DNA of 64,000 nt from Bugula neritina (Eukaryota > Animalia > Bryozoa). Location of the stretch: NCBI GenBank assembly GCA_964035545.1, contig OZ037767.1, positions 30,272,628-30,336,627 on the forward strand, given 5' to 3'. This document shows, in pieces, positions 7,611-13,800 of the stretch; within the stretch, counting starts at the first letter, position 1; each line of letters opens with the position of its first letter. Under the pieces are notes generated by a model. It did no database searches and was not told where the DNA came from. It was given only the letters and a program-made list of their open reading frames with translations. The position numbers and the translations under genes are program-made.

Positions 7611-9639
7611 CTACATTAGAAGTATTAGATTGAAAGGTAGTAGAGTTGTGTAGGTATAAGTCTTCACTCTAATGCCCTCACAAGCCCACTTTCTAAAATG
7701 TACAGAATATCGGATTATTCTATATTAACATAGTATCATCAGTAAAATTACACATTATGCACTTGAATATCTAGCATATCTGCAATTGGCAATTTTGAAG
7801 CAATGTCTTTAGATAACTATTAACCACTCAGGCATTTAATAGAGTAAAAAAGCTAGCTAAGTGCAACTGAATCTATTAAAAACATTTACTATAAAATCAA
7901 TTTGAATTCAATAAATTACTTTAAAATATGAATAAATATTTGCTCATCTTATAATAAAATTAAAAAGTTTAGACTATTTATGCATTCAGTTAGTGCTACT
8001 ACTCACTAAATAAGACTAAAAGTAACTCACTGGAAAACCAAGTCAGTCAACTATAGAATCATCATGAACTCGCATTAATATTTCATCATTATACTCGTTT
8101 ACATTTAGTTACATTTATCATTTCAATTTGGTTATAGGTGATGCTTTTATCAATATGAATATGATTATCAATTGAGTTTTGACAGTAACACTACCTGTAA
8201 GCCTGCCTAATGTGATAAAGATTTTATCATTATATTTTAAATCAAACTTTGAGCTAATTTAAAAATCACAAAAGGAACCGGCAGTTTGACTAGTATTAGT
8301 AGGCCTAATATTAATACTGATAGTAATAGTAATCAGTAACTGTATTGACAAAATCTAAAACAGAGGCTAAAAGTTACTAAGAGTAAGAGTAAGTCTAATG
8401 TAAATTGAAATATTAACTATAGAATAAATCAATAAATATAATACTATCAGTATGAGTATCAAGTTTTAAGAGCAAAGGCGAAACTCAGAGTCAGACTCAA
8501 ATACTAATACAGTAATACTAATAGTAATAGTGAATTTATAATTATTAATTACTTATAGTTATACTATAAGTTATAGTAATACTAATAGTAATACTAATAG
8601 TTATACTATTAGTATTAGTATTAGTATTACTATTAGTATTATTATTAAAAATTTAATGAGCTACATTTGGTTTTACTACCAAATACCAGTATCAGTAAAA
8701 CACGAATAATATTCATTATGATTATCATTATAAGTAACCGTACCTCAAACTGTGAGTCATAGTGAGAGTCATTTAAATAGTTACTAGTACTACTAGTACA
8801 GTAGTAGTAGTAGTAATATAGAATAGAATAGACTAACTCCAAGACATACTCCTAGTGATAGTATAAATATTATTATTAATAAATTGATAACTACAAATAA
8901 TCCTGGCAGCAATTCTAAGTTAGTAGCGTAAATGATTGTTTTGAGTATAATTACCTGTATTGTTGTGGTTTTCAAGCTTGAACGCTAAAGATAAAGATTA
9001 AGTTTAGCATTTATCACTAAAGGGCAAAACAGCTCAGTAACTTAAAAGCTAACTTTGGATGGAACGCGATGAAAAACTAAAACTAGCCTTCGATTTTAAA
9101 TATGATGCTTCTGACAATACGAAGAAAGAGGTGTAAGCTAAATTTATTTGATAAAAAATAAATTTGGAAGATCTCACGCTATGAAAATGACTAAAATTGT
9201 CTTCTTTCTTTAATTGATAACTTCGCAATTTTTTCATCATTTAAAAAATTGAAAGCCTTAGTTACCAACTTTAAATGCAATTTTAGAGCTGAAGGAATCA
9301 TCAAATGCTTACGAAAGTATGATTTTTGAAATCCTTGAATTTATTTGTATTAGAAAAGTCCAAAACCTAAAAATTGAAAACTAATTTCAAATTTAAGTAT
9401 TTCCAAATTAAACCTTCATTTACTACACTTTATAAACACCGCCACATCCCCGGTTTTGTCGCGACTGGTCACATATGTTCACTCTGTAAGTCTAATCAAT
9501 AACCTAAAAAGTTAGTCTAGTGTCATGAGATCCCTTTCTTACACGTTGGTGTTCACTCTCACTAAATATTGCCCTAACTTAAAAATGTCTATAATCAAAA
9601 TGATCTTTACAGATTCAGTGAGCAGTCAACATCAGTTGC

Positions 9640-10150
9640 ATGGCGGATGATTCAAGTCTCCAATTATTGCCTGTTCACAGATTTACTCATCAGATCAAGA
9701 ATCAGTCAGTAGCCTTTCAAGTTATTCAACTTGAAAAAAGTTTTTTTCTTTGGGTAAGTTTTATCATCATAAACATGTAAATCTTTTGTTTCTCTTTTGA
9801 GTATTTAAACATTTTATTCTATTGAACTTGCATAAATATGTGTTTAAGCTAATTAAATAAATATAGTCAATTTGTGTATTTGACTTTTTTAGGTAGGGAC
9901 AGGTGAAGCTGCGGAGTTATCCCATCTCTGTTTGGCTGTACAAAACAGCTATCAGAAAACCCCTATTGCCAGCACATTATTTAGTAACAGCGCTAATAGC
10001 TACAGCAACGCTCTCTCCCAGAGACTAGCTAAGAAAACTGGCAAACAAGTGTTTCTTAGTTACAATATACTGGCTGATGATCCTGACCTCCACCAAGATA
10101 TTCAGCTGAAGATATTTGAGGAGCTTGCTGTTGCTCCCGAGTCTTTCTAG
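9640..10150 (+). CDS. PSMG4: Proteasome assembly chaperone 4, 123 aa. Exons 9640-9753 and 9893-10150; probable non-coding first exon ending at 9485
   Basis: MADDSSLQLLPVHRFTHQIKNQSVAFQVIQLEKSFFLW|VGTGEAAELSHLCLAVQ...PIASTLFSNSANSYSNALSQRLAKKTGKQVFLSYNI...KIFEELAVAPESF contains the PAC4 signatures FLWVG and QRLAKKTGKQVFxSYN. Confidence 0.93.
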
Positions 10151-10159
10151 AATATTAAA

Positions 10160-10477
10160 ATGTCAGCTGATAAAGGCTTAGAATCTAAAACTTCTGCCGA
10201 GACTAACAGATACGCTAACCCCCATGGACGAACATCTTGGGCACGTGCTGGAGCGACTTCTGCATTCAAAGCTATTAATCCGGAGCTCTTCATTAAGCCT
10301 AACAAGTTCACTACGGTTGTAGGTTTATTAGCTTTGTCTGGCTGTGTTGCTTTCATGGGTTATATGCACGCAATGGATGAAAACCAGAAGGATTTCCGAG
10401 AAGGCACTGCATACAAAGCCGTAGATGAAGATGGAAACTATAGCAAGGTGGTAAGCAGGAAGTCAAGGTGGGATTGA
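10160..10477 (+). CDS. SMIM8: Small integral membrane protein 8, 105 aa, intronless
   Basis: FKAINPELFIKPNK, a hydrophobic TM segment (VVGLLALSGCVAFMGYMH) and C-terminal RKSRWD match recalled SMIM8 (FRAVNPELFIKPNK...RKTSKWD). Confidence 0.92.
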   Translation: MSADKGLESKTSAETNRYANPHGRTSWARAGATSAFKAINPELFIKPNKFTTVVGLLALSGCVAFMGYMHAMDENQKDFREGTAYKAVDEDGNYSKVVSRKSRWD

Positions 10478-10882
10478 GATGTGACGGTTGAAACGTATTC
10501 ACCAGATTAATCCTGCTCATTTGCAGTGATAGTTTACCTTTAGAGTGTGTTTTGGTTTTGGCTGATGAAGGATTTTTTGATCACAAAAATCGATGTAGAA
10601 TTGTCAGCAAATGACAGCTGCTGTTTATATGAAGAACTGATTCTAGTGTTTGTAAACAGACAAGACAATGCTGGTGTATTAGTAACATTCTATGATATAA
10701 TAATACTATTTGAATTAAGAATTTCCATTCCATTATAAACACAATATAATATATATAAACTATGAAAGGAGTATTTGTTATACAAGGTACATGTACATAA
10801 AAAGCATTTTCATAACCCTATTGTTATGTAACATAATAATATGGACGATAATCTATTCACGATAAAATACATTTGAATTCAG

Positions 10883-13800
10883 TTATGCCACCAGGGTGAG
10901 CCCTGCACCATTTCCATCCACCATTTTCCTGAAAGCTGGTCCAAGTTCGTCATGGAACTCTTTCTGATTTCGAGCAAAGTCAAATATCTGCAAGAGAAAT
11001 TTTTAAGATTCGAAATTATTACCAAAAGTAATTTTCTCCAAAGATTCGATAATTTTGCTTACTTTTATGAGCACACAACTCCTCAGCTAACACTAGGGCT
11101 TTTTATAAATATTTCACTTCCTTTTGATCCTTTAAACACCAAAGCTTATCAACCATGATTGAAACTAGTACTAACTACCAGTTCAGTGGTACTAACTGTA
11201 TGGGACATTAAGTGAGACAGTTGACAGAGTTGAAAGCTAGTGCAATAATTACTCTTTTACTGACAGAGATACAATTTTCAGGTATCCTTCCTTTCCCTAT
11301 TCAAATATTGCCTGTAATATATGTACAGTTTAAATAAAGTAAGTTTTATCTCCAATTTATTTTTAAATTCAAGATGGTTGCTCGTGTGGGAGTAATTTAC
11401 TGTATAACGAAGGGAGCCATAAGTAGTTGTGATATACTAACGATATGTGCGGAGGGGGTATCTGTACACTCGTCCATTGTTGTACAGGAAGGTTCGTCAA
11501 AGGGCCCTGACACATCATAGTTCTTGAGCATAGACATATCTGCATGCAACATGAGGAAATTAGAATCTGGTCGTGTCCATGCCGTAGAGCTGAAACAAAC
11601 AATGGTTAAATGTGTAAAGTGCGCTATATTTTACTTATTTAATTCATTTTAAAAATTGTTGAAAAATCCATGGTGAAATTATTTCGTCCAAGTTTGAAGG
11701 TCATGTGATACCAAACACTTTTCATATCATTAATAATTTTCGAGATTCACAGAATCTATCAGAAAAATGAATGTTACAATATATGAAAGCGCGAATCACC
11801 ATAAATGCATTATGATCATAAGGTTAAAAATACTTAAATGGTGCCTCTTTTAGGCCTGCATGTCTTCCTACATTGTACTCTGTAGAATACATTTATAAGA
11901 ACTGGTGTAGGTTTCTATTATAGCCTATAATTCATTTCCTGCCAGCATACAACCTGCTTCTGTGAGAACCCCTACATATAAATGCTCTAACCTGCTAGTG
12001 AAATGCAACAAGTAACTTTCAAGGAGTTGTCTTTACATCACTTATAGAGAATATTTGTAGAGAGAGGAGTGTGAAGTTGCAGCAAATATTTGATGCAAAT
12101 AAAATTATTAATTAATTTCATATTGAAACTATATTTATATCACAAAATAGTATTTATCAACAGTTCTTAAAAAAATTAAGTTTAGGGAATTGCAATTTGT
12201 TGCATGAAATTCTTTCCGTGTCTTCATTTTTATAAGGTCATTCATATGGCAAATTACGGCACAAAAATTCTCTGCTTCATGAACTTAGTGTATCATCTGG
12301 GTTAATTCTTTGCATATTTTGTGACTGCCAGTAAAACAGTAAATGAAAGTTATCTGCTCTTTGAAAACAAGGGCACCTAACTCCCAAGAAGTACAAACTC
12401 ACTTGACAAATCTGTTTCTGAAGGGTTTAGCGACCCAGTCTCCGGATGCCATGTTTAAGAAGAAGCCATTGTCGAGTCTGCCGGGGTGACCATCCCAAGT
12501 CCCTGCGAACCCAGATCTGCTGGTGTGTGCTCCACCCAATGAGTGACAACCTGCGTAATGCTTTATATTCAATATGCATATATAATTTACATGCAACCAT
12601 ATTAGTCTGTCACGTTTTATAGATAAATGATAGAGTACTTATGTAAATTATGCAATGTAATTTATATGCATACAGTATTCAAAGTGAAATAAAAGTGCAA
12701 ATTACTGTTTTAAAATGTAACTAACCCTAGCTACTCTTTGAGTACGTCTGGCATGTGGCTACCACAAAGTTGATATGATTGCAATAGCAGTCTCATTCTA
12801 GGTTAAAGAAAAGCTACCAACCCATCAGAGCGACTGCCTCGCGAGCTGTAATTCCGAACTCATCCTGCAGAAGTGGTATTGTGTTGAGGATGGTGCCGTG
12901 TGGAAGATGGCGGTTTGGAAAACCTTGTGCCGGGTTGCAATCCCGTCTACCAATTGAGTATGGTATGTCCACAGTGCCATCTGTTAGAGAAAGAATGTAT
13001 ACTGTACAATACACGAGTTGCTGTAACAAGTAGTTACTGTAGTGTGTTAGTGTAGCCACTCTTTATAACAAGTTACTGTAGCCATGTAACTATTGTAGCA
13101 AGTAAAGTCGCTAGTTAATATCTCGAGACAAAGTATAGGATAGCCTTGTAACAAACACTGCAGGTTACATGTTGATACTCTTCCACCAGTTACTCACTGG
13201 CAAATGTAGCAGCTTGCTTCAAGGACTCTGTTCCAAGTAGAGCAAATATGTCTGCCAGGGACAGCTGTGGTGCATAGTCATTTTTGAACTTCTTAGCAAA
13301 ATCTACTGTACTCTTTAGCCCTTAAAATACACAGTGTTATAAAATCTCTGAAGTTACTTTAAAAAATACTACCCTTGTTCATACTACACAAACGTAGCTT
13401 GAAAGTGGCTCTTTGGTTTGAAAAGTTGAATAATAGTGGTTTATAGCAACATGACTCAGACTACGTCTAGCTAATATACACATTTGTCGAGGAGGAGCAT
13501 ATAATTGGTGCTAAATAAGAATCAACTTATGCAGAAGATAAAACTTTAAGGGGAGAAGAATATAGTGCAATTTCTGCTCACCTCTGTTCCCGGGATTTCC
13601 TTCTGTGTCAACGCACCCGTCACACCCCCCAACACAATCGTGGAATGAAATCTGCACTAATCTGGGCAAAAATGTCATCTGAAAACAATAACAATAACAA
13701 TTTCTGCATCTTCTTAAAATTGCACATACCTATAATTTACATAAAAACTGATATTATTATGTGTTTATATGTAAAAAAAATTATGCAGAAAGGCAAAAAT

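Follow-up and report, generated by a model that had tools for sequence, protein, structure and literature searches.

In the SL1-type operons of Caenorhabditis elegans, which have no intercistronic space, a single site is contested by polyadenylation of the upstream gene and trans-splicing of the downstream one. At the VP1/VP2 junction of caliciviruses, the second protein is reached by termination-reinitiation, in which a conserved upstream RNA motif pairs with 18S rRNA; AUG depletion is not needed there. The spliced-leader (SL) operons of nematodes, tunicates, chaetognaths, and flatworms place neighboring unrelated housekeeping genes under one promoter and are resolved into monocistronic mRNAs, with a leader on each downstream gene (PMC12460157). 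A sequence signature of leaky scanning has been published for bicistronic loci of green algae and for stoned and Snapin of Drosophila (PMC11291117). The subject of this study is the gene pair PSMG4-SMIM8 in a stretch of 64,000 nt from the genome of the bryozoan Bugula neritina (GenBank assembly GCA_964035545.1, contig OZ037767.1, positions 30,272,628 to 30,336,627 of the forward strand), which is called the window below and in whose coordinates all positions are given. The two open reading frames (ORFs) are separated by only 9 nt, between the PSMG4 stop codon TAG at 10148-10150 and the SMIM8 ATG at 10160. We consider it fairly probable that the pair is one transcription unit giving a leader-capped dicistronic mRNA, from which SMIM8 is translated by leaky scanning.

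The locus resembles the leaky-scanning dicistrons in having two unrelated, nonoverlapping ORFs with a short spacer on what would be one capped mRNA, and in having a first ORF that is poor in AUG in all frames and an apparently weaker start context than the second (PMC11291117). Unlike them, it has a trans-spliced leader at its 5′ end, is found in a bryozoan, and joins PSMG4 to SMIM8, which is a new pair; its mode of translation is deduced here from the sequence. With the SL operons it shares one promoter for neighboring unrelated housekeeping genes, a leader supplied by a multicopy small-RNA gene, and an outron (the 5′ part of the transcript that the leader replaces) removed at an AG acceptor (PMC12460157). 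However, the sole leader junction seen at this locus precedes PSMG4; an acceptor is often missing from the spacer, and both ORFs are still together in the assembled RNA.

In the mechanism that we propose, the primary transcript would begin upstream of 9383, and its outron would be cut at the AG at 9611-9612 and replaced in trans by a spliced leader from a multicopy small-RNA gene family on another chromosome. With the single PSMG4 intron removed, the mature mRNA would retain both ORFs, 9 nt apart. PSMG4 would be translated from the first AUG; for SMIM8, scanning 40S subunits would bypass the weak PSMG4 AUG and meet nearly no other AUG before 10160. Reinitiation, either behind PSMG4 itself or behind the short out-of-frame ORFs, may be a minor route. 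The locus would then be a case in which one promoter of a compact animal genome serves two unrelated housekeeping proteins whose coding sequences stay together.

RNA evidence for a two-ORF transcript

The central piece of evidence is a 978-nt Logan contig from run SRR4125604 (L010), which was reached via public contigs carrying SMIM8 protein variants and belongs to the sister lineage of the window. In its two exon blocks it is 100% and 99.6% identical to the B. neritina genome record, and since the intron between them is cleanly absent, it derives from RNA. Without a break, L010 reads a 17-nt leader, the 5′ untranslated region (UTR) from the base homologous to 9613, PSMG4, a TAA stop, 9 nt, SMIM8, and about 235 nt of 3′ UTR (to about 10694), so that at the contig level both ORFs are on one spliced RNA. 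A second B. neritina RNA contig from another run (L008) likewise lacks the PSMG4 intron, yet its sequence still includes at least 470 nt ahead of the acceptor; it is RNA whose outron is not yet cut off. The same intron is missing from an X9 metatranscriptome contig of a relative, which contains the joint 9753>9893. PSMG4 lies directly upstream of SMIM8 in all seven contigs on record that carry a B. neritina SMIM8 protein variant (six of them were read), and no contig joining a leader to SMIM8 is among the seven. We infer that single mRNA molecules carry both ORFs and that the same holds in the genome of the window. These results support the claim of an earlier note on this DNA that one promoter makes both proteins, and a contig reading through both coding sequences (CDSs) is what its proposal of a dicistronic mRNA had called for.

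Laid out on the window, all parts of the unit are on the plus strand. After the leader comes a 5′ UTR without ATG (9613-9639, as in L010), followed by PSMG4 coding exon 1 (9640-9753, 38 codons, colinear with L010), the 139-nt GT..AG intron (9754-9892), and coding exon 2 with the stop codon (9893-10150). The spacer AATATTAAA (10151-10159) is three sense codons in frame with both ORFs. SMIM8 is intronless, with 105 codons and a stop (10160-10477, colinear with L010), and its 3′ UTR extends over at least 10478-10694, the reach of L010; no poly(A) site was seen in it. The window is AT-rich, with a G+C content of 29-39%. The PSMG4 exons were searched separately, and ATGs of the joined mature RNA were counted locally. 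In Pfam, exon 2 of PSMG4 matches PF16093 (PAC4; E = 2.8e-15) and the SMIM8 ORF matches PF14937 (DUF4500/SMIM8; E = 4.6e-19), and human PAC4 in the PDB matches exon 2 with an E value of 4e-12. The SMIM8 of the window is 98% identical to the cluster containing B. neritina SMIM8 KAF6026861.1, and a look-up of its exact sequence found no database record. The stop codon, the in-frame spacer of three codons, the ATG, and the identities of the two proteins are all as the earlier note had read them.

Upstream of PSMG4, the 3′ part of the outron (9383-9612) has its homologous stretch in L008, and contigs from two runs labelled as the same organism (X1 and X10) cover 9383-9533. Four short X1 and X10 contigs break at 9611 with four nongenomic letters beyond; so early a break would fit several leader variants spliced to the acceptor. 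Over 9611-9696, the X1 and X10 contigs show two allelic differences, 9654 A>C and 9666 A>G. Hexamer-periodic tracts (TAATAG, AATACT, TAGTAT) are found at 8306-8339, 8500-8647, and 8782-8815, which is 0.8-1.3 kb upstream of the acceptor, and in B. neritina a similar hexamer tract forms the 5′ end of the outron-retaining contig (L008:1-80). The outron may start near the tracts at 8306-8815.

It had also been proposed that the leader region is spliced in cis, from the end of a noncoding exon at 9485 or from the PSMG4 donor at 9753 to 10151. The product would be an mRNA for SMIM8 or one in which the PSMG4 N terminus is fused in frame to SMIM8. The joint 9753>10151 and the spacer are indeed in phase 0, and the context of the TAG is acceptor-like in this genome. 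However, neither joint is present in any RNA contig, and the donor at 9485 lies uninterrupted within L008 and an X10 contig. The GTAAGT at 9486 and the AG at 9611-9612 are thus present as described, but no RNA was found that uses this donor to end a noncoding exon, and the acceptor is used by a trans-spliced leader instead. Together with the loss of the AG at the stop codon in other lineages, described below, this makes alternative cis-splicing very improbable.

Spliced leader and its candidate genes

The 5′ end of L010 is a 17-nt sequence, TTATAGTTGCATAAAAG, that is absent from the window and contains no ATG. The last bases of this leader (...GCATAAAAG) are directly followed by the base homologous to 9613, the first after the AG at 9611-9612. 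The genome contains five exact matches to the 17 nt and 24 matches with one mismatch, compared with none and two for the reversed sequence used as a control, and none of the exact copies is on the chromosome of the window. The 17 nt are the 3′ end of a unit of about 71 nt, which is followed by GTAAAT within a conserved gene of about 220 nt. At least 18 copies of this gene are scattered on C8 between 11.85 and 13.14 Mb (for example, L024:1501-1720), and more diverged copies are found on C5 (8.08-8.32 Mb) and C3 (31.46-31.63 Mb). The copies share the same layout: a variable leader of about 71 nt, GTAAAT, and a highly conserved tail of about 145 nt. In the predicted fold, the donor is paired with the leader in a stem and two hairpins follow on the 3′ side, with few compensatory changes among the copies. 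The single-stranded stretch between the predicted 3′ hairpins contains no canonical Sm site, and the gene has no match in Rfam.

Four other copies of the 71-nt unit (L030:1501-1567, L031:1501-1571, L036:1501-1573, and, on the minus strand, L032:1501-1571) pass precisely at the donor boundary into unrelated sequences, among which are LINE ORF1-like ORFs with a PHD-type finger. Judging by these boundaries, the fusions are probably retro-copies of trans-spliced RNAs. The 220-nt family members look like candidate spliced-leader RNA genes, and the junction 9612/9613 looks like a trans-splice acceptor. The full leader would be about 71 nt long, of which the last 17 nt have been seen in RNA, at one gene, PSMG4-SMIM8. 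The suggestion of the earlier note that SL trans-splicing acts at this locus therefore stands as far as the process is concerned, but not as to its site, since the junction lies ahead of PSMG4 at 9612/9613 and not at 10151. A literature search found no published report of trans-splicing in Bryozoa.

Conservation of the pair and the spacer

The order PSMG4-SMIM8 with a spacer of 9-35 nt is kept in nine lineages, whose SMIM8 proteins are 65-98% identical to that of the window. Eight of the lineages were read base by base and the ninth from gene calls alone. Because so many lineages keep both the order and the short spacer, the tight pairing is not a matter of chance. The PSMG4 stop codon is TAG in the window (spacer of 9 nt), L002 (17 nt), L003 (27 nt), and L048 (15 nt), TAA in L006 (9 nt), L004 (10 nt), and L005 (25 nt), and TGA in L047 (34 nt); in the ninth contig, about 35 nt separate the PAC4 call from SMIM8. 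A protein of 116 aa (P0014) that looked like a variant was rejected, being a gene call that reads a TGA through.

L006 is the public B. neritina genome (GCA_010799875.2). It is 89-93% identical to the window in the aligned part, and upstream of 9469 there is no alignment (window 9000-9468 against L006:1-2317). Given this divergence and the unaligned upstream part, the assembly of the window seems to represent a distinct lineage of the B. neritina species complex.

The earlier note took the PSMG4 stop codon for a candidate splice acceptor and drew attention to the in-frame spacer. Neither point is supported by the comparison. An AG in the stop codon or the spacer is missing in three of the eight lineages (the sister lineage and two others), so the stop codon is not a conserved acceptor, which counts against cis-splicing to 10151 as well. 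Readthrough of the stop codon, which would give a membrane-anchored PSMG4-SMIM8 fusion, draws on the in-frame, stop-free spacers of the window, L006 (9 nt), and L048 (15 nt). However, three of eight is the number expected by chance, and in the other five lineages SMIM8 is out of frame or an in-frame stop intervenes; the identity of the stop codon also varies. A readthrough fusion is thus not conserved, and we regard it as scarcely credible. Among the sequences compared, it is the order of the genes and the short distance between their ORFs that have been conserved.

The same comparison bears on whether the pair is a trans-spliced operon of the usual kind. The two-ORF RNA would then be a precursor, and a second leader would be added just before the SMIM8 AUG, at 10150/10151 (TAG/A) or at 10142/10143 (CCCGAG/T), to give a monocistronic SMIM8 mRNA. 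Trans-splicing does exist in this organism, the stop codon lies in an acceptor-like context (TCTTTCTAG) in this genome, a conserved pyrimidine-rich CCCGAG is found 8 nt further upstream, and other animals with trans-splicing usually resolve their operons in this way (PMC12460157). The RNA and the comparison among lineages speak for a different outcome. A leader joined to SMIM8 occurs in none of the seven contigs mentioned above, and L010 is unbroken through the site. In the three lineages without an AG in the stop codon and spacer, the only place for an acceptor would be within the PSMG4 CDS, and its use would destroy the PSMG4 mRNA. The hexamer ATTAAA is present in the spacer of the window and of the sister lineage only and in none of L002, L003, L004, L005, L047, and L048, so PSMG4 has no conserved 3′-end signal of its own. 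Resolution of an operon would, in addition, not select against ATGs in PSMG4. We therefore regard the resolved operon as unlikely. The upstream 3′ end and the downstream 5′ end practically abut, as they do in the SL1-type operons of C. elegans, which makes independent processing of both impossible; unlike in those operons, no conserved poly(A) signal or acceptor is found at the junction.

AUG depletion and start contexts

The preference for leaky scanning as the route to SMIM8 is based on the depletion of ATG in the upstream cistron. In seven lineages (the sister of the window was left out), PSMG4 exon 2 contains 4 ATGs in 1722 nt (2.3 per kb) and SMIM8 contains 57 in 2163 nt (26.4 per kb), so that ATG is about ten-fold rarer in the former. 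The PSMG4 exons of four outgroup metagenome contigs that have no SMIM8 downstream contain 13 ATGs in 822 nt (about 16 per kb). The difference in PSMG4 exons between bryozoans and outgroup gives P = 2e-4 in Fisher's test, a value that overstates the independence of the data, as the lineages are related. Two further contigs, L059 and L060, were excluded from all counts; their PSMG4 exon is vertebrate-like, with 4 differences from human PAC4 in 38 residues. When the order of codons in exon 2 was shuffled in eight lineages, of which the window and L006 are close relatives, 12.6 out-of-frame ATGs were expected and 4 were seen. Shuffling of synonymous codons in seven lineages predicted 7.6 ATGs, again with 4 seen (P = 0.04), and SMIM8 showed no ATG deficit under the same treatment. 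At the protein level, L048 has one Met in the aligned stretch of exon 2 and the other seven lineages have none, while human PAC4 has two.

In the mature RNA of the window, three ATGs precede 10160, whereas about eight are predicted from composition. The two besides the PSMG4 start, at 9647 and 10077, have C at -3 and open ORFs of 21 and 10 codons that end before 10160; the one at 10077 is the single ATG in exon 2 of the window and is out of frame. At the PSMG4 AUG, positions -3 and +4 are T and G in all three lineages in which exon 1 is visible (two of them independent), while position -3 of the SMIM8 AUG is a purine in all eight lineages (A in the window); by these bases, the PSMG4 start context may be the weaker of the two.

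Termination-reinitiation would account for the same RNA evidence: ribosomes finishing PSMG4 on the dicistronic mRNA would stay on it and restart at the nearby SMIM8 AUG. The stop-to-start distance of 9-35 nt in nine lineages is short, which favors reinitiation (PMC11291117), and since so uniformly short a spacer suits this process, we retain it as a secondary route. As the main route to SMIM8 we consider it improbable, because it leaves both the ATG depletion and the succession of a weak and a strong start context unexplained, and selection against ATGs in the first cistron is expected neither from reinitiation nor from operon resolution. Reinitiation is also generally inefficient after an ORF of 123 codons unless a dedicated RNA element assists it, and a conserved motif beyond coding constraint was not seen. 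The closeness of the stop and restart codons is shared with calicivirus VP1/VP2, but no motif of the calicivirus kind is evident here. Of the earlier proposal that SMIM8 is made by reinitiation on a dicistronic mRNA, then, the dicistronic part is supported, whereas the ATG depletion favors leaky scanning over reinitiation. We infer that SMIM8 is probably translated by leaky scanning.

Several points weigh against the leader-capped dicistronic mRNA with leaky scanning. The two-ORF RNA is a short-read contig, which need not represent one molecule, and the contig belongs to the sister lineage, with DNA 89-93% identical to that of the window and TAA as the stop codon. Four runs matched against the window itself gave only short RNA contigs, and run X5 gave none; these contigs show just the leader-type break at 9611 and have no coverage of 10114-10850. 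Contig assembly would lose any minor form in which a leader is joined to SMIM8. The ATG depletion is for the most part accounted for by which amino acids and codons are used, and it was counted in lineages that are related to one another. With G at +4, the start context of PSMG4 is only moderately weak. Finally, a uniformly short spacer is needed by reinitiation but not by leaky scanning.

Beyond this locus, Bryozoa may be a further phylum with spliced-leader trans-splicing, in which, unlike in nematodes or tunicates, tight gene pairs are left unresolved as a class of leader-capped dicistronic mRNAs; ribosomes would reach the second ORF by leaky scanning across a first cistron free of AUG. We put this forward tentatively, as a plausible generalization that we would not yet call probable. 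For this phylum, trans-splicing and dicistronic genes both seem to be undescribed so far. The signature of ATG depletion would be a cheap finder for more such pairs, as it can be computed from genomic DNA. ORF listing of two other stretches of the genome (L054 and L055) gave no clear gene models, and a search of the genome for the Pfam domain Vma12 (PF11712) had no match; the control genomes likewise had none.

The gene list of the public B. neritina record (L006:2457-2990, VXIV02002196.1 of GCA_010799875.2) contains SMIM8 as KAF6026861.1 but no PSMG4 at this locus. Since the second gene of the pair was called without the first, gene finders may overlook the upstream cistrons of tight pairs, perhaps systematically. 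On the 3′ side, a convergent gene on the minus strand (10880-11000) ends about 400 nt past the SMIM8 stop codon, and the homologous gene call in L006 has a peroxidase domain. L008 continues from the PSMG4-SMIM8 unit into this convergent peroxidase-domain gene, and the 3′ ends of the two units may therefore overlap.

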